From NCBI GenBank assembly GCA_000320545.1, contig ADNK01002546.1, positions 62,001-126,000 on the forward strand: a stretch of 64,000 nt of DNA, given 5' to 3'. This document shows positions 3,546-57,470 of the stretch, in pieces (position 1 is the first letter of the stretch; each line of letters starts with the position of its first letter). The notes under the pieces were generated by a model. That model did no database searches, had not been told where the DNA came from, and was given only the letters and a program-made list of their open reading frames with translations. A program made the position numbers and the translations under genes. The stretch comes from Bigelowiella natans CCMP2755 (lineage: Eukaryota > Protista > Cercozoa).

Positions 3546-4210
3546 TATTCAAACATATTCTAATTGTTATGCTGTTTTATTTCAAGTAGCTTGCAAAACG
3601 ATTTATGAAGGTTGCAATATCCCCCCCTCCCCAAAAAAGGCAAACTGTTAGGGCCAACCGGAGTGAATTAGTATGGGCCTAATGGTGAAATGGTAATGTA
3701 TGTGCTCTTTTGGTTGCAAAAAGCCGTATACCCTCTTGTTTGCAAGTATTCGCCCCAGCCTCTGTCGCCTATTCTCGTCGTCTTTGGAGACTTGCATCTG
3801 ATTTTTGAGGTGTGCACAGCGTTATCACAGATTCCATCAGCAGCTATCTCCATAAACAAATTCCTCTCTCACCCTCCTTCTTCATCCTTCGTGTGGATTC
3901 GAATGAACCCATACACGAAAACTTAAGTTTGAGCGAAAATTTGTATGCAGGCCGGTTATGGGAGAAATCGTAGACGAAACGCGAGAGATTTTCGAATGCT
4001 TAGACATGAACATAAAATATTATATAATGTTATTTGTGTGCACGTTGTATGAGGCGTGCGTGGCTGACACTTACTGTGGTAAAGGAGGAAAAGACTTCAT
4101 ATCACATCGAGTTTCCCAGCCGTTCCAACGCGAACAGTAACAACCAAACACCGAATCAAAATCCAAATTGATTTTCTTTTCCAATACGTTACCAACGAGG
4201 ATTTCAAAAT

Positions 4211-4250
<40 letters not shown>

Positions 4251-5468
4251 ACGATCTTCAACAAACAAAGAAACTTGTTTATTCTCTCATCAGCAACGTG
4301 TGAAACTGGCGCGTACAGCGGGTGGATTACCTTGCCTTTCTTCCACCTAAAAGTCCCACTGTAACACATACGCATAATTGCACGATGTCAGTCAATACAA
4401 GCATACAACTTCATCTCGTGTAGTTGCAGAAGCTAATCTTACACGCTCAGGTGTTGATTAGTATATACAAACGTATCCAATCGAATCGCTGCATTCAATG
4501 AGCCCTCATCATGGAAGAACAAGGGCAGTGGTACATGGCGCGCTCTCAGTAGGAAATGAGAAAATATTAGCAATACGCAACGGTGTAAATGTATGTTTGG
4601 GTGTATCCGTGACTGTCTTTCTTTGTGTGTGCTCGGATGAGTGTGTTTCTGTTTTGAAGGCGTGATACGGTTCGGTCTTACGCATACCTGTACATCCCGT
4701 CTCCACGAGGATCCAAGTTTATCTGTATCAAAATGAATAATGAACGATGGGAAACCGAAGGCATCTTCGATTTGAAATGGTGAGCCGCGTCGCTTTTAAG
4801 GTGAATGAAAACAGCACGAATGCGCTCCGTTCATTATTGAAAACGTTGTTTGAAACATGTATTCGGTCGGAGAAGTGCTCGTTGGGATGAATATTCTTCG
4901 CAAATTTCAGTTGAAAGAAAAGGCAGAATTCAAAACCAAGAGGCGCCAGCCCCCTCCGTACCTGGCTCTGCAGTTTCTTATTCGTCTTCGTTAATAGTCG
5001 CGTGCAGCCATTACGAAAGAGAGACAAAATTAAAACATACCGCCGCACTGCAGGTTCAAAATTGCAATACTACCATTTTGAGGGCGGGCGAGACCGCCCC
5101 GCCTCGAGTTTTTTTTTTCCTCCCCATGGCCTACCAGGAGGTGTCGGGGGGGGGATGAGGGAGATGGATGTTGGCCGTTAGTGTTGGCGGTTGTTGCGAT
5201 ACTAAATTACTAAAATAACAATACTTATTGGAAGGAAAACCTAAAACAAATACAAAAATTATGCGGATCATTCTTGGAAATATATAGGTTGTTACCAGCG
5301 TGATTTTTGTTCTAAAATCAAGACCCTCGAAACAAAGAGGAGCGTCGAGAACCCAACAGGTGGGGAGGGCGAACTGTGTCTGAGCCTATCTGCCACAGCA
5401 CCTCTCATTCCAAGTTCCTCGTCATGGCATTCGTCCCTGAATCTTAAGTATGGGCGCATGCTTCGCAT
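1..5468 (-). CDS. Multi-exon gene, MSS51/ZMYND15 C-terminal-like domain protein; 3' end runs off the window, N-terminal exons uncertain
   Basis: Minus-strand GT-AG exons join into family-like motifs: ILNIVVIGATVK (~2877-2912) | AEERTLVDTAYWEEIPAILT (~2741-2802) | DLALYMVGPEVS (~2490-2535) | KILPENTLIVGFNTGYGNFVESKDK (~727-805) | LLEEWMADLRYLSDKKF (~545-598) | CLFTCANDYADLVGEFK (~312-363) | VQALVLGANFDMLP (~70-118). The pattern IxVIGA..E, MVGPE, GFNxG, W..L..L, FT resembles MSS51/ZMYND15. The start codon is a guess. Confidence 0.6.
914..960. repeat. Representative intronic (TA)n microsatellite; dozens of (TA)n, (CA/TG)n, (GA/TC)n and G/C runs occur through the window's introns
   Basis: Directly visible, e.g. 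914-960, 8439-8502 (GA), 12376-12460 (CA then TA), 22020-22110 (TA, TG, GA stacked). Confidence 0.95.
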
Positions 5469-5469
5469 A

Positions 5470-6350
5470 GTTTTGGCATCCAGAGATGCATGTGGAAGGG
5501 AACGCTGATCATGCAGTGCTGGAGTGTTCAATGCATCATCGTCTTTTCAACGTGGCAATTTTCAAGTCTCTTGCGTTCCTCAGCACTTCACTCTCACACA
5601 CCACGCAAGGCTTGCTGCGCACACCTGACCGATTCAGTTCGTGTTTGCACCAAATAGACAGAATGTTGTGGCTCCATGTAGCCATTGGCGATTGCGGCCA
5701 CACCACAACTAAGTCAAAACGTTTGGAAAGTGCTGTGATCACTCTGTGTCCGATGGAGCATTTGTGTCATAATTTCCGGGCGTGCTCAGCGTGCATACGT
5801 TTCTAGCTTAGCATTGTACATTTTGGCTAGCTAGGCAGCCAGCACGATGCGTTGCATGCATTGCTGCTGACCTGCGAAACGTGCGATCTGACGATGCGGA
5901 GATGCCTGGCTAGCTGGATGCGTGCGACGGATAGAATCGACACGCCATGCTCTGGTGCTTGCTAGCTGGCATGTCCGCGTGTCATTCAGTGGTGCTATGG
6001 TGCTCAGTAGCTGGCCAAGTCACTTTGCAATGCAACAGTGACACTCACAATGCATCAAACAAGTTGATGCGGCCGCACCACCTAGCTAGCTAGCTAGCTA
6101 GGCTACAGGTGTCTGTGCAGCTTGCAACGACGTTGCGAAACAGCTAGAACAGGTCAACTACTAGACTAGCTAGCTAACCGACTGCAGCTGCACATGCGTG
6201 TGTCTACAGCATCAGTCGTTGCACACTTGCTTCAAGCCATCCTAGTTTGAACGGTGCACACACACGAAGGAATCGCCCACAAATCTTGCATCTAGCTATT
6301 GACATGCATGTCTAGGTGTGCACAACATTCACACAACACATTTCACACAC
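5470..6350. other. TpA-depleted intergenic island 1 (TA survives almost only as CTA/TAG)
   Basis: Hand count: 29 of ~32 TA dinucleotides are CTA or TAG, and all 24 are in 5821-6350. About 7 unprotected TAs occur in the next 130 bp. The chance ORFs 5486..5806 and 5536..5742 contain no Tyr. Confidence 0.85.
6082..6101. repeat. (CTAG)5 microsatellite
   Basis: ctagctagctagctagctag. Shorter (CTAG)3 runs occur at ~40091 and ~56871, also inside islands. Confidence 0.95.
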
Positions 6351-6499
6351 AAGTATGCTGTGACTATTGTATGTCTATTTTATCTCAAACAAATGTATGG
6401 ACCCATTCTTAGCGTTGGCGCACGCACTGTTAGTATTCTTGTACATGATGATAGAAAGAAATCTTAAAGGCATGATTCTTTGCAACAATGACCACTAGC

Positions 6500-8438
6500 G
6501 AGGGTCCTGGCAATTTACAGCCTAACGGTTCTTCTTCGTTTCTACTCCTTTTTTATTCTGGGAAATTGATGTTGGGTAGCGATTGGATATAACCAAGAAC
6601 AACAAGAAGTTTATTTCTCAGGCGTGACTCAAATTCGAGTATGGAAAGAACAATTTTAAGCGTTTGCAGAATAAGGAGGGAAGAGCTTCATGCGGAACAT
6701 AGGCTGCATGCATTACAACTTGTGCGTATATCAATAATTCAAAGGCAAAGAAAAAACTCATCAGGCAAATCAAACACAATTACGCATAGTTATTCCTGAC
6801 CCTCACCTCATCGGCACATTAAAACACATATAATATTAACAACTTATACATAGAAACTGAAGAACACCACTTTAGAGCAGCTGTGTAGTACCTCTGCAGA
6901 GGGCAATACTTCCGATGATAACACGGTCTTTTCAATTCTCGCTTTGATACGATTCTGATGAGCGTGTTTTCACATAATGGGCCAGATATCGTACAGGTAA
7001 GGCATATGCACGGAAAACGGCCTCTGCCATTTTTCTCTTTCTATCACAACTAGCTGCGACGACGATGAACACTCTCATAAGGCAGTTACCTTGATTATTC
7101 CGATGAATATCAAACCTAAAAACATTATTTCAATAGAATCAACTTAGGTGCTGAGAGCTCTAACCTCTCGATGTATCCAAAGGTAAATTGGATCGACTTG
7201 GCAGCCAAATTTAAGCCATACGTCTACTAAATATCGGCGCACTGAGTAGAGCGAGCAAGGCCACGCGCGCCGCCATCATAGTGCGCAATCGTGTCTTATT
7301 ACCGATGAAAAAACTAGAGAAAGAAGCTAGGAATGTGATTTCTTGGGGAAGCAAGAAATACTTCTGGCAGAGAACACCTATGGCTGTTGATTGATATATC
7401 AAAACAGTAGGCATTAGTCAAGTACAGCTCCGAAACTCTCCCTCCCCGTCGCTATTGGGGTGACGGGCAGCAGAGCACAGTTGCGGAGTTGATTAGTACC
7501 AAAATTAAAAAAAAAATGCGTATTAAAACCAAAAACAACATCTTGAAGATACCGATCGGCATGCGACGAATATGTAGACACATAGACAAATAAAGAAGCC
7601 ACAAATATACAAACACAGACTCTTCTGTTCAAACCCTTCACGAACATTATGCAATTATTCCTTTCACATCAAAAATACGATGGCGACTGTGATAATGCCA
7701 CACGCGACGGAAAGAAGAGAAAACAGCTCAAGACGGAAATCAATGCTGCTTCTTGTACCCATGACAACTACGACGAGGATGATAGGCGCCGACTCCATTC
7801 TCTGAAGTTGATGTCCTGGCAAGGAAGAATCATGCTAAATCGCTGAAAAACGCTACAAAACCGTCTTCGAAGCAAACCGCAGGCAACACAAACAACATAA
7901 CGTATATCCCCCAAAAGTATTCATTTATTAGCAAATTGGTCAATGCATCTCTAGGTGATGCTAACAAAATCACGAAAACGCGGTAAACTGCTGACGAAAG
8001 CACGCTTAAGGCCGTTCCTTGCGTATTTCATTAAGATTTTGTATTGGCGGTGGTTGACCGATTGTGGGGCCTTGATGTTCGCTCTCCCTGTGTGGAGACA
8101 TGTAACGAGTAAATCAAAGGTTGGTGGGGAGACCAAGTGGATCGCTACATTGCAAAATGGAAGCATGCAGAGGAATAATTATGTTCCCAAATAAGCCGCC
8201 CTTTCGTCTAAAGGGATTCTTATGGCGAAGGGTTACTGAATTTTGTAGATGTTATCGATTAGTGCTACGAGGCATTGAAGGCCTACTTGCTCTTCTGGTT
8301 TGGAGGATATCCTCTTGTCCACACAGGATGAGGCTGAGCGGGGGGGGGGGGGGGATAAAGGCCATTGATGATACAAAACGACTACTATATCTGATATGAG
8401 TTATGTGAGTTTGTTATGGTGCGTAGGTTTTTGTGGGC

Positions 8439-8503
<65 letters not shown>

Positions 8504-9491
8504 TAATTGTGTAATATAAAGCAGACGGCCTTCTTTGACTGCATATCCATCATTGACAATTGTCTAATCATAACTATAAACATATAAATGTGTGGGCACT
8601 ATACGCTGCAGCATATTCACCCATGCATTAACATATATGCGCCGAACCTGATCTTCTCCTAGCAGCTTGCCTCCAATCGCTATATGGGAGAGTTCTTCTC
8701 GAATATAACAAGAAACATCACACAGCGATTTCGAGCATGCATGTGTAAAGTGCACAGAAAATAGAAGTATATGAATATATATAAATAAATATATTTAAAC
8801 GTTATCTAGTATCGTTGTAGTAAACTCATGCACATTTGTTTTGTTGTGACTGTATTTGAACGCCAAGGGGTAAATCTAGCTGTCAAATATACAAATCCTC
8901 TTCATGCCTTTCATGCGTTGTCGTAGTCTTGTAACTTACCGATTTGCGGGAAAAGCACTTGCACCCGATCTGATTATGATATGGTCATTTTATGGAGAAT
9001 ATGAGGAGTAGAAGGAAGGTTTTGGATGAGCATAATAGCAATAAGAGTAAATATTGAGATGCTGACACGAATGATGCTAGTTGTAGCTGCAAGTAATTTA
9101 GTTGTATTCTCTGTTTCGACTCTTGAAAAACCGTTTTATCAGGTCAATATCGTTATAGTACTACAACGAATACATTAATTTCACATTGGGATAATGCTTT
9201 GTACAAGCGGACGCATATAAATGCAGCACATTTTGCATTCACGTATGTGAGTGCATGCTTCGGTGTGCAACGTTGTGCTCGACGACGAAGTAGGTCAACC
9301 CCACCTGATTTGGCAAAGGGTGCTAAAGCCTTCGTGATGCCATCAGCTAATCATTATATCGAGGGGAAACGGCAGCGGAGGAAAAACAAAATGTAGCGTG
9401 TAGCGACGAATAAGAGCACGCAAATCGCAACACAATCACTAGGAGGTAAGGGACATAAAACGCATTTCAACAGTTTAATCTTCGCGAAGCA

Positions 9492-13222: not shown

Positions 13223-16200
13223 CTACATGCCAATAGCCTCATACAAACGAGAAATATTGATACTAGAAAGTTTGCGTCGCTACACGTCGTGTGCATGTGT
13301 GATAAATAAATGCGCATGAATGCTGCTGCAAACATTTTTGCCACTAACATCTCTCCCCTGGATGACCTTGACAAACCAGACGATGACTACTTCCAACACA
13401 TTTGACGTGCGAGAGTCCGTCGATCAGGTCGGTTGCGATTAGAAACAGCACGCATAATCTGTTTTCATCACCCCTTGCGCATTCTTGGATATGGCACACA
13501 ATATGTATAAAACGTCATTTCCGGGACAGTGCTTCTTGAGTGCATCGCCTTATAACAAATAGCATTCTTATGTTATCGTTATGAACCCCTCCCGCCCCCC
13601 CCCCCCCTCCCCCTTCTCGTTCTCTCAATAGGTCATCCAAGTGGCCGACGCCGGGGCGGATATCGTCCGTCTCACGGTCCAAGGTGCTGTATAGCGAGTG
13701 TGATATGCATGTGCAATCGGCATGAGTGTGACCATGAGCGAGGCGGACAACCTAGAGCCTTATACTGCAGAGAACAACATAATAGCAGCGCATTAGCCTA
13801 TAGACACCTCGAAAGCGGACGCATCTGGGGAGGCGCGTCATTTCTTACGCCTCTGCAAGATCGTTCCCAATTAATCTGCTGAAACATGGGGCGGGGGGAG
13901 GGGGGGGGGGTTCAGGGAAGGGAGAAGAGATGAAAATTTTGAAAAATCTAGAAGTCAACGAGAAGAATAACCAACCAACAGGGAAAAAGGAGGCTAATGC
14001 TTGCATGAAGATAAAGGACGAGCTTCTTCAGAGAGGATACGACATTCCTCTGGTAGCGATATGATGATAATTAACTGATAGTAGTAGCAGCACCATCATC
14101 ATCATCATTATCGTCATCAGCATCATCATCATTATCATAATCTTCAAGCATCTTGCTAATATGCATAAAAGCTGCCGTTAGCATCACCAGTATGCATGCA
14201 TGGGGGTACTTGCGACGATGATGGCTGCGTGCATCTACGAACACTAATATCCACGCAAAGAAGGAGAGAGAGAAGAGGATGGGGGTAGGGAGAGAGATAG
14301 AGAATCAGATATTCAAATCCCACTCCCACGTTTATGATATAAGCCGATTCTTTTTGCTGCAGGTTGCGGATATCCACTTCGCGCCAGCCGTGGCAATGCA
14401 GGTCATCATAGCACACATATTGCCTCTTTCTCGTTGTCTCTCCTAGCTTTCTCGCTCTCTCGCTCGCTCTCTCTCTCTCTCTCTCCCTCTCTTTCTCTCT
14501 TTCGCGCTCTCTTTCTCTGCTCCTCCTTCACCAAGGCGCACGCATACACGCTCTTCCAACCCCCCTCCTGCCGCCTCCACTTCCCACGCTCTCACTCTCC
14601 ATTGCAGGTCGCTGATGCCTTCGACAAGATCAGAATTAACCCCGGAAACTTCTACGACGGTACGCGGGAGAAGAATGCGCATGCAAGCAATGCCATCGAT
14701 CTCGATGGGAATATGCATCTCCAGAGAAAAACAGCTGAAGCCACGCACGTTTACAAATGCGGAGTCGTATACGCACGCTTCCACACACGTTTGTTTCCTT
14801 CTTTTTTTTCAAAAGAAAATCAATATTTCGTCTCATATCCGTAACGCTGGCCTCGCTCTCTGTGCGCAGGTCGCAAAACCTTTGCGGAGGACCTCATGTA
14901 CGACGAGAACTCATACGCTGCAGAGCTTGAGAAAATCGAGGAGACCTTCACCCCCCTTGTGGAGAAGTGCAAACGGTAGGATGGGCCGGCGGCATTGATG
15001 ATATGTCTAGTGCGAGCTGGTTTCGAATTTGCCAGCTCCAACATTATTATAAGTATATAATATATTTATATTTATATTTATATTTATATATATGAATATT
15101 TATTTACATTAACCATATCGGATAATCGACGAATATAGGCTGAACCGTGCTATGAGGATTGGAACGAATCACGGCTCGCTCTCTGCCCGCACACTGTGCT
15201 TTTACGGGGACACGCCTCGAGGTGGGTGGGGATGTGTATCTCTGTGTGTATGTTTGTGTGTGTGTGTGTGTGTTTGTGCTGAGTTTCGTCATTGCTTGAG
15301 AGTCTGCTGCGTGGCACTCTCGATCGAAGCCGACTTCACGCGCCACGCATAGTTAGATGTTGTTTAGAATATATCAATGTGTATATACTGCTGTTATTCG
15401 TAACGAAACGCATCCATTGCTCTAGTGCCACGATCGTTTCGTACGTGCGTCTTTTGAAGCTAGATGTGTGATGCGTTTATCATGGGAGATCTAGCCAGTT
15501 TTTTCCCAGCGAGGACGGGGGGTGAGGGGGGGGGGAGGGTGTTAAAACTTATATTTCATCGTTCACGTCTCCCGATTCATTTTGCTACTGGAACTATTCC
15601 CCAATAGGAATGGTGGAGAGTGCCATGGAGTTTGCAGACATCTGTCGCAAGAACGACTTCCACAACTTCGTCTTCTCGATGAAGGCGTCCAACCCCCTGG
15701 TCATGGTACAGGTACAATGAGCAGCATCTTTGAGGAGGGGGGGAAGGAGGGGTTAGAATATGTATTCGGCATTTCAATGATTGTCTTTGTATTGAACGTC
15801 AATCGTGTTTTTGCATTATTAATCGTTGCAATTTATCCCTCCCCCCCCGCCCCTCTCCTCTCGTGCAGGCCTACCGTCTACTCGCTGCGGAGATGTACGA
15901 GAAGGGGTGGGATTACCCTCTCCACCTCGGTGTCACCGAAGCAGGTATTGCTGGGTGGAGAGGGGGGGCGCGACTATGTCCGGCGCTTGTTGTGATTGTT
16001 GTGCGAGCATTCGTGCACAGGCTTGCGTGTGTGTGCGTGTGTGTGTGCGGCTGTGTTATTTCTGGCATAGAAACAGGAGCTGTTTCGTTTGCGAGAAGCG
16101 CCTTAAATTTTCCACTTTGCACTGATATGATGATGTTTGTGATTGCGAGAACAATTGCGTTATGCTTCTCTCGATCTGCTGCTTTTGCGGCGGTGGTATA

Positions 16201-16250
16201 CGAGACTGGGACAGCGGGGGGAGAGAAGGAGGAAGAAGGAGACTTGCTGC

Positions 16251-16289
<39 letters not shown>

Positions 16290-16501
16290 GATTCTCGAAA
16301 TATTATTGCCAGGTGAGGGAGAGGACGGGCGCATGAAGTCGGCGATTGGAATTGGTAATAAAAGCGACATTTGAATTATTCGTGACTCCTTTTATCTTTG
16401 TAGTATAGTGCGGATTGCCTCAGAAAGACTTTTCACCCGCTATTCTCCTCTTTCTGTCTTTGTGTGTGTATGTGTGTGTGTGTGTGTGTGCGCGCGCGCG
16501 C

Positions 16502-21493: not shown

Positions 21494-22019
21494 ATGTACT
21501 ATATATTTCATATTAACACATTACTTTTGAATATTGCGTGGCGATTCGAAGAGTGTATGTGTTACATCGGGGCTAGCTGTTTGCTATGTGACTGGTATGG
21601 TATGCATCGGCGATAATATGTTGTTTTGTGGCCTCTTCTAAACGCAGGAAATGGTGAAGAAAGGAATCCCTAATGCTGAGGCATGTGATGCTCTCATTGA
21701 GCTAATTAAGGTGTGTGGATATCGCCTTAGTTTTGTGTGTGCGGGGCTCTGAGTCGGTTGCGTCGGCGCGGAGTATTAATTTAGATGTTATGGTTTATTA
21801 CGCATGTGTGTATGTGTGTATCTGCGTGTGTGTGTGTGTGTGCGCGCGCGCGCGCGCAATGCTTATACGTGTTTATGTTCTTGTATGCATATGTGAGTTG
21901 AAAACTCTGTTTCTAAGCCGACAACTAAGTTATTTCTTCTGAGTGAATGCCATTCGTTTGCTAGGAGCATGGGCGTTGGGTTGAGCCTGAGCCTAAGGTG
22001 TGCAACTACACGTACATAT

Positions 22020-22072
<53 letters not shown>

Positions 22073-22073
22073 C

Positions 22074-22113
<40 letters not shown>

Positions 22114-22269
22114 GACACTTCCATGCTAGCATTGCAAAACAAAACACAGGTATGCCACAAGAAGATATGAAGCTTCGAGACGGTTTTCTTACTTTTCCTT
22201 CTATCCCGTGCATCTGCCCAGGAGGACTTGAGTGCAAGCAAGGAGGCTGTTGGAGCGGCTTCTGCATGA
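11530..22269 (+). CDS. ispG: 4-hydroxy-3-methylbut-2-en-1-yl diphosphate synthase (IspG/HDS/GcpE), plant/green-algal long form, plastid-targeted, ~30 exons
   Basis: Spliced exons give [12 protein letters not shown]|[21 protein letters not shown]|[10 protein letters not shown]..|[11 protein letters not shown]|..VADIHF..|[10 protein letters not shown] (14608-14659)|[12 protein letters not shown]|FSMKASNP|[11 protein letters not shown]|[14 protein letters not shown]|[15 protein letters not shown], then the insertion domain ([19 protein letters not shown]|[10 protein letters not shown]). The 4Fe-4S motifs follow: [15 protein letters not shown] (20512-20584), IAVMG|[15 protein letters not shown]|[12 protein letters not shown]. 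Stop TGA at 22267-22269. Exon 1 ([29 protein letters not shown]) is signal-peptide-like. Confidence 0.96.
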
Positions 22270-22479
22270 AACGGACAATTGAAGAGCAGCACGACAATTC
22301 TAGGAGGAAGAGAAAATGTCTCTACTAGACCATGATTTGTCGGCGTTTATTCGTAGGCTTACGGCTATCTAGCTATATTCAACCATGATGATGACATATA
22401 GCACATCTTTACTTTGCTTTAATAAACAAAAGCGATATTCTCGGTGAGAACATGGGTGTACCCATTGTACAATGCTACT

Positions 22480-24138
22480 CTCGGCGTCTTGTGTTTGGTT
22501 TGGCGCCAGGCAACCAAGCAACGCAAAGATGATTCGCTGTCAGAAAGTGTCATTCATTCGTGTGCGGACGATCTAGCGATGTCTTGGTGTGCCGTTCATT
22601 TGTGTGTTGTTTGATGTCGGGGCGCACGTCACTTCGGCGCATGCATTGCGACATGGAATCACGTTTTTTGTTAGTGTCACACAAGGAGCACCCGCCTTCA
22701 TGAGTCTCCAAAGCGATATGTCTAGCTGTACGTTGAATGGCGCCACCACAAAGCGCAATATAATAGCAATGCAGCGGGCTTGAAGTTTAAGGGAGACGAC
22801 CCGTCTGTCCTAGTGCCGAAACATTTATAAAATAACAAGAAATGAGAGCAGTAAACATGTGCTTGCTTGCCAATATCCCCAGAGTTCCACGTGTGTGCTT
22901 TGGTAACTTTTCATTTTGTTGCGGCAGCGTGCATTTTGCTCCGTGCGCTCTTCGCTGATGGCCATCACCGCTTTCTGGACCCCGTCTCATCCTAGCATCC
23001 TTCGCAGATCGACCAAATCGACGCACACTTTTTGGTCTAGCAGCGCAGCGAGTTCTTGTTCAATTTCGGATCCTTTTGCAGATTCCGAACTGTGATGATC
23101 AGCGCTTCAGGGAGGTGTCAAACGTTTTCCTCAAAAAGTGCCCAAATTTGAAAACAAATTTGGGCACTTTCTAGTGAAGAAATACACTAGTACATTCAAC
23201 AATGCTAGATTGTGCGTGACAGTTGTCGTGTTATGTCTGATGAAGATGGTTGGCACCCGCCTTGAAGCTCAGATCAAGATGCTTCTGAATCTGCAAAAAA
23301 AAAACGAAATTGGACACAAATTCGCTACGCCAGACCAAAAAGTGCGCGCGCAATTTGTCACAATCAAGACATTGTGCATGCCAGTGCACATCAATGTTAG
23401 CTGTGAGCGTGCGTACTTGCATGTGCATGGCATTGATGATGGTTTGTGCTAAGTGTGGATGACTATGCATTTTTTGATGCTGTCATGCACATGTCACATT
23501 TGTGCATACTTCTGCGCCATGGTCGATTTCATTTGGCAGCGCGTGCGCACGCGTACACGCCAAGCGTCCGCGCTGCAATGAGCGAACGTGGGTGTAGGGG
23601 AAAGCAGCATGGTGTGCAAATTCATCAAAAAATGATGCAACCCCAACGCGGAGTTCTTGAGTTAGGAAAAACTGTGATTGGGTCATTTTGAAGAGCGCAA
23701 CCACGGCGTTCGATTGCGCCCAACCTCAGCTCCAACCGACATCTGGTTGCCGAGAAAACTCATTTTTTGTGAAAATGCGCGCGTTTGAGCAAGTTGTGAT
23801 TGGACCGATTGAAGCTAGGAATGCAACTAATAACGTTCTCATATTAATGACCAGCTAGCCAGGCGCATACGCGACGAAACAAACAGCTTGGCATCATTGG
23901 AGTCGAAAAGGGCACGTCGTTCGTATATTTATACATTCAATGACATTTTATGAACCATCAGATAGGAGCAAATGATGACCATTGCCTCGCGACACTTCAG
24001 AATTCCAAGATTGGGCAGGACATCCTTGACACCTTTGCAAATCAAGAATCGAGTCACAAACACACAACGTCCTTTCGCTGCAAACTCACACCTGCACAGA
24101 GTGCGCATGGCAACACCCGCGTTTCTGTCTACTTGTGG
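22480..24138. other. TpA-depleted intergenic island 2 (patchy), between convergent ispG and DNMT 3' ends
   Basis: Depleted patches at ~22480-22715, 22910-23825 (about 18 TA in 915 bp, 12 of them CTA/TAG) and 23950-24138, separated by TA-containing patches. Confidence 0.75.
23023..23347. mobile_element. Foldback/MITE-like relic: ~110-bp imperfect inverted repeats flanking a perfect 16-bp hairpin
   Basis: 23023-23133 (gcacactttttggtctag..caatttcg..ttttgcagattc..gcttca..ggtg.caa..ttc.tca) aligns with the reverse complement of 23237-23347. Central hairpin aaagtgcccaaatttg-aaaa-caaatttgggcacttt at 23135-23170. Confidence 0.55.
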
Positions 24139-39955: not shown

Positions 39956-40069
39956 AACCCATATTTAACTAGAACTTGCTGGAATCTGAGTATTTCAACA
40001 TTTGTTATTGGAACTACTTTGAAGTTCAAATTACGGATTTGTTTCGAATCGCAACTTTACTTGATTAAA

Positions 40070-40960
40070 ACTTTGTTGCACACTATTGGACTAGCTAGCT
40101 AGTGCATGCAACGGGCTACGTTGAAATTGAAATTTGTTTCAAATTGAACAGCCTTCTTGCACTTTGCAAAACTAGAAAACTTCGAGTAGCTCATTGCAAA
40201 TGGCAAGTCTGCTGACATGAAGGAAGAAACAACTCCGTCAAACCAGGCAAAGGCGGGGTTGTGAACAGTGCAGCGCTTCGCGACACGCTGTGAAGCAGGC
40301 GCGTTTGTTCTCTGCCACAGTTTGAATGTTTTGACGCGTGTGCTTGCTAGCTTGCACAATCCACACGTGCGCACGAAAAATCCCGAAGAAATGCGAGCAA
40401 ATTTTGCATCCATGACATCAGCTTTTGCGCGCGATCGAACACATTGGATTTTGCGGAGCTATTCCAGCATTGCAACTCAGAAACTGATGGATGACATCAA
40501 GCTAGCAAGCTAGCAAGTTGGAGGAGGACACGTTCATCGTCACAGAATTCACTTGGGATGAATCTTTGACACAGATCCGAACATCCTCTAGATCCTTCAC
40601 TTGGCAACCGATTCACCGGTAGCTGAGGCGACACGTCAGTCTGCTTCACCGATGAACAGGAATGTGGTTCAGGGATAAAGTGAAAAGCCACCCTCGTGAC
40701 CGAAACCCTGCCAGCCTGCCCATTGCTAGATTGCCACTTCGGCGAATGTGACTTTGAATCTTGATCACAGATCCGTGCATCCTTAGTCTGGCAACCGAGT
40801 CACCGGTGGCTGGGGCGACATGTCTGTCCATCCCACCGGTGAGCAGGAATGTGGTTCATGGGTAGGAGGAAAAGCCACTCTTGTGACCGAAAACCCCCCG
40901 CCCATCACCGAAGGCCCCCTTTCTTCTCTGCCACACAGCCGAGTTGCTGCTTTCGCTAAC
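40070..40960. other. TpA-depleted intergenic island 3
   Basis: Hand count: 17 of 18 TA dinucleotides are CTA/TAG over ~890 bp. It starts ~115 bp after the PPR stop codon. Confidence 0.85.
40560..40895 (+). repeat. Diverged direct repeat, two ~140-bp copies
   Basis: acagatccg..catcc..tggcaaccga.tcaccggt.gctg.ggcgaca.gtc..caccg.tga.caggaatgtggttca..gaaaagccac.ct.gtgaccgaaa at ~40570-40706 and ~40767-40893. Confidence 0.85.
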
Positions 40961-41476
40961 CCGTTAATTCTGACCCTGCGACATCATCAAATCCTCTAAA
41001 AACTCTAAAAAGTCATTCGATTTTCCCAGGAGCGCTGATACTGTGAATCCTCGAATCGGGACGCAAAATATTGAAAAAAAAGGGACATGTTTCTTACTAA
41101 TATGTGAGAAAAAGGTTATTCTTTAAGTCTGAGGAGTTCATATCTACAAAATCTCGAGAGAATCTCCTAGGATCGTCGAAAATCTTGAACTCATTGTGCT
41201 CCTCCCTCTCTCTCTCCACGTTGGAAGGGTAAAAGCCGAATGCAACTGTGGTGGATTCCGTAGTGTGTACCCAGCCAAGGGGAGGGGTCAATCACCGATG
41301 AATAGGGCGGTTAGGGGATGCACATTTCGTTTGGTTGTAGAGCAATAGACAAGTACAGATGAGGAATTCGGGATTCATTGACAAGACTCAAAAGCCCTTG
41401 TGGAACAATTTGCACCCTCTATGGGACTTCCGCTTTTTTTTCTTCTTTAGTGTCGTACTCGATATCTGAGCTAGCG

Positions 41477-55613: not shown

Positions 55614-56126
55614 TTCTCTTTTGCCTTCGCTAGTTTGATTACATTGCATCTTCCTTTGTATGGAAGAAGGGTGCACTATCGTTGTTTCGATGTATGCTTT
55701 ATTGGGGGTTTGTTGTTTTGTAAGCTCCCGCCCGTCCTTCCTCGACGCAGTCACATCTCCCTCGTTTTGGCTGCGATGTATATTTTTAGGAAACTATCAC
55801 AAGCGACGAACGTCAGGCGGTGAGAAGTCGTCATCACCGGTAAGTGTAAGTCCGAGGGAGTTATAACCTGGTGCGGGAGGCAGAAGAGGGGGAGGAGAGG
55901 GGGGGAGAGGTTTCGGAAACATTGTTCAGAGTAATCAACGCTATGCATGTTTGTAATGTAATGAGCGTCACAGGATAACATGGTGTGATATTTATTCTTG
56001 ATAAATTATTTATAGAACCAGGGGAAATTGGGAGCCGCTTCTGAGCGATTAGCTAGGTAGTCAGTCGCATATTCTTTCATACCATTCTGTATTCGCGCAA
56101 ACGCGCGCGCGCGCGTGCGCCCACTG

Positions 56127-56158
<32 letters not shown>

Positions 56159-56339
56159 GCACTCACACACACGCACGCACTCACACACACGCACTCACAC
56201 ACACACTTGCACACATCCATAGACAAATGTACGCCGTGGGTATGTATGTGAGAAAAATTCCGCACGCATGTAAATCATGCCGTTGCCATTTCCCAGGTGG
56301 TTTAAAGGGAAACAAAGCGAAAAAACTAGCGGAAAATAG
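41477..56339 (+). CDS. TBC-domain Rab GTPase-activating protein with a C-terminal EF-hand-like segment, many exons
   Basis: Exons give ELMKAG|IPPSIRGEVWK (46224-46259), WLSQIQKDIPR|T (IxxDxxR, ~47545-47577), RILVCYYYRNPQAVGYCQ|GMNLVAAGLLSVMDEADAFWSL (YxQ, ~48238-48575), IGYYTKSMAG|LLVDQ, LYDHMKKLEVTIASFTTSW, LWDYLFCYG, LFQVSLALLK, KEILELNDSGMLL and DGDRRVGKADL (~53388). Stop TAG at 56337-56339. The start may be 41477 (MSEPATEAK) or 42839. Confidence 0.9.
54811..54963 (+). repeat. Intronic ~64-bp direct duplication
   Basis: cacctatcgtttaaagagtattcttgaatggattgaattttatcgctcacgtcc-attaa (~54816-54874) vs cacctatcatttaaagactattcttaaatggattgaattttaccgctcgcgtcccattaa (~54904-54963). Confidence 0.9.
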
Positions 56340-56744
56340 AAGTCTCACGACTCGAATCGTTGTAGCATAATGATGTCACGTAAGGATCACGGTGTAGGGC
56401 ACATTGTTTAGGCATTGCTGCGTGCAGTGTTCGCGTACAATGAGAATTGATGTAGTCGCCAAAAGGGTGATAGCTCGCAATGCATGCAGGATCAACCTCA
56501 TTTAAAAAAATCGGCAATCTCCATGAGTCAGTAGACTATTTCATGTGTGATGCGTTGCGTGCTCAAACATTTGCTTCCAATTGCTATGTCTAATATTTCG
56601 TTCGTCTACACAGTACATCGAAGCACCAATCTAGCAATGTATGTCATTAAACTCGCGCAACATTGTGCATGCATGTGTGTGTACGTGTGTGTGCGCGCGT
56701 GCGCGCGTGTGTGCGTGTGTGCGTGTGTGTGTGTAATTCATTAT

Positions 56745-57470
56745 GGCGCACTAGCTGCATGCACAGCATGCTAGCATCTAGAGCATGTCCAAAAAGATGG
56801 ACACAAGTCAGGAATTGTGCTCGCATAGGAAGCAAAAGGGTCTCTAACGAGCTCTACCAAGCAGCCCCCTCTAGCTAGCTAGCCATAACTACCTAGTCGA
56901 TCAGCAAGAATCTCTGTGTCTGTTAGCTAGCCCTCCTCGCAGAGCTAGAGCACATCTTCCTCAGCATATCTGAATGTGTGGCCCCACAGCGCAATGCACA
57001 CTGCTAGAGTACGCGTGGCATTTACACGATGACAAACATCATGCTAGCATGCGAATTTAGTCATTCCGCAGTCCTCTTGCCACAAAATTAATGGATGTGA
57101 CATCACATGCTCACAGCATTTGTGCGTCTAGGGACGTGCTGCTAGAGCAATCGTGAAAGCGATCATGTGAACACATGAGCAGTGTAGGCCACGTGTTACA
57201 CAATCTGTAATCGTTGCATGCATCTGTGTGAGTCGGTGACGGGCTAACACGCTAGCAAGCCTGTAGCACATATGTTATTTTACCGACAACCTGCAGAATA
57301 TGCATGTGAATTCGCAAATACAGCTACAATGCGAAGCCACCATGCATTGTGCCGCATGCAACTGAGCGCACGCACGTAGATGCCGCTCACCTTGACTAAA
57401 ATGCACGACGAATGCACATGTTGTCAAGTTGCCAAATGAAGTTCAGTGCGGTCTAACTTCTTCAATCGGC
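56745..57470. other. Partially TpA-depleted, CTAG/CATG/TGCA-rich intergenic island 4, between convergent genes
   Basis: Dense gctagc, gcatgc and tgca motifs. Most TA in 56745-57190 is CTA/TAG. The depletion is weaker than in islands 1 and 3. Confidence 0.65.

Follow-up and report, generated by a model that had tools for sequence, protein, structure and literature searches.

TpA hypermutation and CTAG insertion as likely sources of the composition of an untranscribed spacer in Bigelowiella natans

TpA-directed hypermutation and its described relatives

The closest described system comes from the same organism. In a mutation-accumulation (MA) experiment with Bigelowiella natans, 231 of 302 nuclear point mutations were located in two viral inserts, one of 186 kb from a giant virus and one of 25 kb from a virophage (Mettrop et al., bioRxiv 10.64898/2026.01.13.699255). 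These 231 de novo mutations, collected from 15 MA lines, are nearly without exception T→C or A→G changes at TpA (Mettrop et al., 2026). The giant-virus insert hit by hypermutation is silent. Hypermutation was found only in viral inserts, and the process was linked to viral and transposon-like sequences (Mettrop et al., 2026). An ADAT2-like adenosine deaminase was proposed to act in defence against foreign DNA, and the candidate carries residues linked to DNA editing (Mettrop et al., 2026). Footprints were defined by Rho CpA+TpG ≥ 1.52 and Rho TpA ≤ 0.43 in at least three consecutive 1-kb windows; flanking bases, CTAG and host spacers were not part of that analysis (Mettrop et al., 2026).

Here, a 64-kb stretch of B. 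natans DNA (the window; all coordinates refer to it unless stated otherwise) was analysed, which contains an island almost devoid of ordinary TpA. This island shares with the hypermutated viral inserts the organism, the loss of TpA, the gain of CpA and TpG, the rise in G+C and the strand symmetry. Its CpA+TpG value of 1.71 exceeds the published threshold of 1.52. In contrast to the 186-kb and 25-kb viral inserts, however, it is a 1.06-kb single-copy host spacer between two transcripts, and it is far nearer saturation than the published target (CA+TG observed/expected 1.71 vs 1.29). No sign of a foreign origin was found for the island: it is single copy, its ORFs have no significant Pfam match, and its edges lie at the ends of host transcripts.

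Fungal RIP introduces C→T changes mainly at CpA, depends on duplicated sequence, takes place before meiosis and reduces G+C. The B. natans process resembles it: both are hypermutations restricted to one dinucleotide and to transitions, and both leave islands of altered composition outside genes. The B. natans process differs in that T:A is converted to C:G at TpA, in single-copy DNA, in asexually propagated MA lines and with an increase in G+C. A test for the direction of RIP yielded the opposite: TA is depleted, CA+TG is enriched and the de novo changes are T:A→C:G.

Among deaminases, ADAT2/TadA, ADAR and APOBEC are similar in their strict need for a particular 5' neighbour, their restriction to transitions and a proposed role in warding off foreign nucleic acid. 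In ADAT/TadA substrates, a U precedes the edited A. APOBEC clusters are strand-coordinated and arise on single-stranded DNA, whereas neighbouring hits in the B. natans MA lines lack strand coordination. In B. natans, the enzyme is only a candidate.

Anatomy and composition of the spacer

The island lies between two genes, both with spliced RNA coverage and both on the minus strand, their introns appearing as CT..AC in the plus-strand letters:

5074..5186, minus strand: first exon with RNA support in the left-hand gene (RNA contigs and raw reads)
5294..6353, no strand: TpA-erased tract filling the intergenic spacer; residual DTAH only at 5445, 5449, 5770, 5796 and 5817
5470..6350, no strand: stretch under study, with 32 TA, among them 29 in CTA or TAG and 17 in CTAG
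6367..6559, minus strand: 3' end of the right-hand gene, with poly(A) tails visible as runs of T to the left of 6409 and 6430

Over 5273-6060, RNA coverage is essentially nil in both RNA contigs and raw reads. The erased tract begins just past a TATATAT run (5281-5287), which may be the TATA box of the left gene. It stops 13-55 bp short of the 3' end of the right gene, one RNA contig of which extends to 6367. Since the RNA-free interval matches the tract, the erased tract corresponds to the untranscribed spacer that separates the two genes, which are arranged in tandem on the minus strand. The RNA-defined borders concern one island (5294-6353). Low-depth RNA contigs at 6061-6257 match up to 6103 inside a (CTAG)5 array and then diverge. 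This signal probably belongs to another locus that shares the CTAG array, and not to transcription of the spacer.

The flanking genes (3731-5186 and 6409-9349) contain internal exons of only 19-34 bp, e.g. 4076-4094 and 4963-4985, and introns of 88-375 bp, all of them GT..AG. At position 6638, towards the 3' end of the right-hand gene, 3 of 17 raw RNA reads have A>T, for which strain variation or error is possible. A weak GcpE (IspG) match in the exon at 15863-16291 fits a plastid-bearing host.

In 5470-6350, TA occurs 32 times and is found 29 times within CTA or TAG; in 5821-6350, this applies to 24 of 24. From base composition, 44% of TA would be expected in this 'protected' context (binomial p = 6e-8). 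DTAH, i.e. TA in neither context, occurs 3 times compared to 29.8 ± 4.6 in 5000 mononucleotide shuffles, where the lowest count was 15. For 881-bp stretches of the window the median is 41, and just 10 of 1263 sliding stretches contain at most 5. Downstream, the next DTAH stands at 6354; four are found in 6354-6396, and the count reaches 7 by 6465. The observed/expected ratio of TG+CA is 1.71 in 5470-6350 and 1.60 in 5280-6350 vs 1.14 in the whole window, and that of CpG in 5470-6350 is 0.73. G+C amounts to 0.50, f(CA+TG) to 0.200 and DTAH to 3.4 per kb. Rho_TpA is 0.60 in the intact stretch and 0.30 after removal of the CTAG tetramers (published cut-off ≤ 0.43). The ORF at 5486-5806 (106 aa) lacks Tyr altogether and encodes 10 His and 7 Cys, a trivial consequence of the loss of TA and the gain of CA and TG.

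These values bear out what an initial annotation had read from the letters: 29 of ~32 TA in CTA or TAG with 24 of 24 in 5821-6350, abundant TG and CA, roughly retained CpG and an ORF lacking Tyr but rich in His and Cys. Its figure of about 7 DTAH in the 130 bp downstream agrees closely with the 7 found by 6465, and the depletion of DTAH persists in the comparison with shuffled DNA. The annotation underweighted, however, the complete CTAG among the surviving TA. CTAG accounts for 17 of the 32 TA, several of them inside GCTAGC, and reaches 19 per kb in 5470-6350 and 10.2 per kb in four islands together vs 1.8 per kb in the remaining window. Among the 12 one-sided CTA/TAG survivors of the island, 8 belong to the two slowest mutation classes (see below).

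No paralogue of 5470-6350 by which substitutions could be polarised is present in the 91.4-Mb assembly, where the 881 bases match themselves alone. A search for internal repeats in this stretch found none, and a Pfam search of the island ORFs gave no significant match (best E = 0.076). As the island is single copy, the designation 'RIP-like' in its repeat-induced sense does not apply to it.

At least three more tracts in the window share high TG/CA and many CTAG, and the four islands together make up 9% of it:

22904..23841, no strand: second tract; TG+CA observed/expected 1.43-1.62; 5 exact CTAG scars (see below) peeled from 22250-23900
40006..41068, no strand: third tract; 610-bp stretch free of DTAH, 7 CTAG scars, a diverged tandem duplicate inside
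56000..57300, no strand: fourth tract; TG+CA observed/expected 1.56, 17 CTAG, 5 scars, flanking (CA)n/(CG)n microsatellites

The two copies of the tandem duplicate in the third island (40592-40708 and 40779-40895) are 79% identical, and several of their differences are TA vs TG or A vs G. At the edge of the second island (22018-22112) a compound (TA)n-(TG)n-(GA)n repeat is located whose TA-to-TG junction resembles a partly converted (TA)n. The fourth island contains long compound (CG)n/(CA)n and (TG)n/(CG)n microsatellites at 56093-56226 and 56657-56734, the CG units of which are not accounted for by TpA conversion.

Context dependence of the mutations and their fit to the island

The viral insert was located via its capsid gene, and 200 kb of contig G000:C3187 were used to anchor the published coordinates. 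All 206 TpA mutations of scaffold_10 fall on TA in this contig at one single offset, and the TA count (6169) and Rho_TpA (0.45) of the anchored region equal the published figures. After remapping, 154 of 3650 DTAH (4.2%) were mutated de novo compared to 52 of 2296 one-sided CTAH/DTAG (2.3%; odds ratio for DTAH 2.1, p = 2e-6) and 0 of 223 CTAG (p = 1.4e-4 vs DTAH). By class, the de novo rates are:

ATAT: 6.5%
CTAT/ATAG: 5.0%
TTAA: 5.0%
GTAC: 2.4%
CTAA/TTAG: 1.9%
CTAC/GTAG: 1.1%
CTAG: 0

The strongest influence is exerted by the base adjoining the mutated one: 20 of 2742 sites with G at +1 were hit vs 67 of 2532 with T. To our knowledge, such an aversion to G at +1 is not among the rules described for ADAT. 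A multiplicative model of the two flanks predicts 2.3 hits at CTAG, so that the observed zero goes only weakly beyond it (P = 0.10). CTAG may thus stand at the far end of a general effect of G/C flanks instead of being a specially protected word. The sparing of CTA/TAG is real but graded, and CTAT/ATAG is not spared. This means, the proposal that DTAH is converted and CTA/TAG spared holds for the lower CTA/TAG rate and the 0/223 at CTAG, but fails for CTAT/ATAG, which mutate as fast as any. The strand-symmetric T:A→C:G process at TpA that the initial annotation had postulated does exist in B. natans, where it is seen directly in the MA lines. It is not an uncharacterised mechanism, since the 2026 preprint had already reported it.

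T→C and A→G changes are balanced in the MA data (115 vs 91). Mutations are mildly clustered, with 16 neighbour pairs within 200 bp vs 7.3 expected. Only 4 of these 16 same-line pairs are of the same type vs a permutation mean of 8.1, and the orientation of opposite-type pairs is mixed by eye. The lack of strand coordination speaks against an APOBEC-like sweep over a single exposed strand; adenine deamination and thymine modification fit it equally well. With 206 hits, 6169 TA and 3132 generations, the rate is about 1e-5 per TA per generation. Three hits per TA would be reached in about 3e5 generations, and targeted DNA would therefore saturate quickly.

As for the chemistry, the most probable reading is adenine deamination by an ADAT2-like enzyme, as the preprint proposes; a modification of thymine at TpA would leave the same footprint. 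TpA is self-complementary, and therefore the thymine and the adenine route both yield TpG and CpA. An attack on the thymine, e.g. a hydroxylation that yields a 5hmU-like base mispairing with G, appears rather unlikely, although the MA data (115 vs 91; 4/16 of the same type) cannot separate it from the adenine route and dinoflagellate 5hmU is enriched at TpA, a parallel in its favour. A six-frame search of the genome for Tet_JBP (PF12851) had no match, which weighs little because the genes are highly split and the controls of this search were unmatched, too. For adenine speak the ADAT2-like candidate with its DNA-editing residues and the tRNA substrates of ADAT, in which U33-A34 corresponds to TpA. 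The search for A_deamin (PF02137, ADAR/ADAT1-type) found a single, ordinary-looking locus (G000:C2414:14438-15741) that is uninformative on DNA editing.

To relate the measured spectrum to the island, the context-specific rates were applied to introns of the locus itself, with about 3 hits per TA. The simulation yielded a TG+CA observed/expected ratio of 1.68 vs 1.60-1.71 in the island, an f(CA+TG) of 0.209 vs 0.200, 1.7 vs 3.4 DTAH per kb and a G+C of 0.47 vs 0.50. The same rates were also applied to the remaining DNA of the window, and the resulting 4-mers were compared with those of the islands:

CATG: predicted enrichment 3.4, observed 2.5
TGCA: predicted enrichment 2.2, observed 2.3
GACA: predicted enrichment 2.2, observed 2.1
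GTCA: predicted enrichment 2.1, observed 2.25
GCAC: predicted enrichment 2.1, observed 2.2

The correlation of log frequencies with the islands rose from 0.21 for unmutated DNA to 0.79 after simulated mutation, and for TA-free 4-mers predicted and observed enrichment are correlated as well (Spearman 0.55, p = 7.5e-10). The abundance of TGCA and CATG results from double hits on TATA-like runs. A single-step test comparing NTGN enrichment with NTAN abundance found the two uncorrelated (Spearman 0.06 and -0.21); double hits, e.g. TATA→TGCA, are not considered in such a test. The multi-hit simulation fits. These results support that the process accounts quantitatively for the loss of TA and the excess of TG, CA, TGCA and CATG in the island. 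From this composition, we infer that hypermutation acted on the single-copy spacer itself. As only 3 DTAH are left there, no de novo hits would be expected. A first reading as motif or microsatellite enrichment without mutation was dropped in view of the preprint data and the fit of the simulation.

Three 4-mers are left unexplained by the simulation: CTAG, GCTA and AGCT. For CTAG, 1.6 per kb were simulated vs 19 in the island. One-sided CTA/TAG survivors amount to 13.6 per kb in the island vs 3.7 simulated, an excess that is tentatively attributed to decayed CTAG scars.

CTAG insertion and the interpretation of the locus

When transposons excise, they can leave footprints: Tc1/mariner elements leave TA-plus-end scars, and piggyBac leaves TTAA. 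The CTAG of the islands resemble such footprints in that a short target duplication surrounds constant bases, in non-genic DNA and in nested and tandem arrangement. In the window, 15 of 148 CTAG carry identical 4-mers on both sides, vs about 1% for 15 other palindromic 4-mers. The fixed-length arrangement XXXX-CTAG-XXXX is hence found at 10% of the CTAG. The 4-bp duplication dominates, and 5 bp form a minor class. The four islands hold 14 of the 15 matched-flank CTAG, and iterative peeling revealed 5, 5, 7 and 5 CTAG events per island vs 0-1 for control cores. In 5470-6350, the following are found:

5906..5917, no strand: insertion scar CTGG-CTAG-CTGG (4-bp target duplication plus CTAG)
6082..6101, no strand: tandem array (CTAG)5, which fits repeated insertion of CTAG into a CTAG target, or slippage
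6139..6152, no strand: insertion scar AACAG-CTAG-AACAG (5-bp duplication)
6157..6168, no strand: insertion scar ACTA-CTAG-ACTA

Genome-wide, 12-mers with matched flanks occur far more often than mixed ones:

CAAG-CTAG-CAAG: 1815
CTGG-CTAG-CTGG: 1125
CTGG-CTAG-CAAG (mixed): 17
CAAG-CTAG-CTGG (mixed): 22
reversed control 12-mers: 4-13

In the third island, copy A of the tandem duplicate alone carries a 9-bp insertion, ATCCT-CTAG-ATCCT (40583-40596), where the other copy has a single ATCCT. This difference is a polarised insertion. Targets preferentially have C as first base (10/15) and G as last base (7/15). CTAG itself fits such a C-N-N-G target, which explains the (CTAG)n arrays.

The initial annotation had ascribed the surviving CTA/TAG to sparing. 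For CTAG, this does not suffice: sparing gives the 1.6 instead of 19 per kb of the simulation, and matched flanks (1815 + 1125) far outnumber mixed ones (17 + 22). Since CTAG is about 10-fold enriched and sparing cannot enrich a word, its excess stems from a separate 8-bp insertion, i.e. CTAG plus a 4-bp target duplication. In the viral insert, scars were found at only 4 of 221 CTAG; insertion and hypermutation are thus separable. Extrapolation from the 15 scars in 64 kb suggests about 10^4 scars genome-wide.

The most economical reading would be that CTAG insertion is the excision scar of a cut-and-paste element. In no superfamily known to us does excision leave a constant CTAG flanked by 4-bp duplications. 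The scars differ from described footprints in that they have no known parent element and that none of the 21 de novo indels of the MA lines is of this kind or contains CTAG. A literature search for a published account of CTAG scars or of a CTAG-leaving transposon found nothing relevant. Among the 13 de novo insertions of the MA lines, 7 end in ACA (+GACA, +CAACA, +ACA, +ACACA and three longer ones), on which the preprint does not comment (Table S2 in Mettrop et al., 2026).

It is quite likely that two separate DNA-level processes acted on the untranscribed spacer, a near-saturated TpA hypermutation and a stereotyped insertion of CTAG. In the first, each TpA would be turned into TpG or CpA, by which G+C would rise and chance ORFs would lose Tyr and stop codons. 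TATA-like runs would become TGCA, CATG, (TG)n and (CA)n. The rate would be set by the two flanking bases, with A/T flanks fastest, CTAC/GTAG slow and CTAG at zero; due to this context dependence, CTAG and its slow neighbours would be the survivors. The second process would add CTAG together with a 4-bp, sometimes 5-bp, target duplication, preferring C-N-N-G. As the inserted CTAG is immune to hypermutation, it would accumulate and seed (CTAG)n arrays. The spacer itself, and not just viral inserts, would accordingly have been a target of hypermutation, and targeting would follow transcriptional silence or the chromatin state.

It is unlikely that the spacer is degraded foreign DNA, a transposon or virus fragment hypermutated for that reason, with host spacers as such not being targets. 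The preprint ties the process to viral and transposon-like sequences, the CTAG scars indicate repeated use of spacers by mobile DNA, and saturating mutation would wipe out recognisable coding remnants, all of which would suit such an origin. However, the 91.4-Mb assembly contains the stretch only once, its ORFs lack a significant Pfam match (best E = 0.076), the edges of the tract match the ends of two host transcripts instead of an element boundary, and four such tracts are present in 64 kb. Very improbable is a selected composition in which GCTAGC, TGCATGCA and CATG are functional (factor binding, boundary, termination) and TA is avoided for function without any special mutation process: the words are indeed palindromic and recur in several spacers, and a TATA-like run is kept at the tract edge, but the 4-mer spectrum is predicted from ordinary DNA and the measured mutation spectrum with no fitted motif, the duplicated CTAG flanks of arbitrary sequence are the signature of insertion and not of a motif, and the shift from TA to TG/CA arises in real time in silent viral DNA.

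Starting from the two processes acting on the spacer, a wider reading may be offered tentatively, as one that could well prove wrong. Hypermutation would be aimed at the untranscribed, silent DNA between genes and would stop at transcript ends, and viral inserts would be hit on account of their silence. Roughly 10^5 generations would be enough to saturate host spacers, so that only TA words that cannot be attacked persist, CTAG being the extreme. A second activity would have placed CTAG with a 4-bp duplication about 10^4 times in the same spacers, and it may be a mobile element that recruits hypermutation.

The locus is one more footprint of the already reported 'inverse RIP' at TpA. Beyond the preprint, the analysis adds the tetranucleotide rule, a saturated host spacer bounded by transcripts (one island checked) and the co-located insertion of CTAG. 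Inserted CTAG raises Rho_TpA, and therefore a TpA-based scan as used in the preprint misses such tracts. The tetranucleotide order, with ATAT fastest, CTAC/GTAG slow and CTAG at zero, constrains any candidate enzyme. A saturated host spacer between a promoter and a poly(A) site would move the question from the recognition of foreign DNA to the marking of silent DNA.
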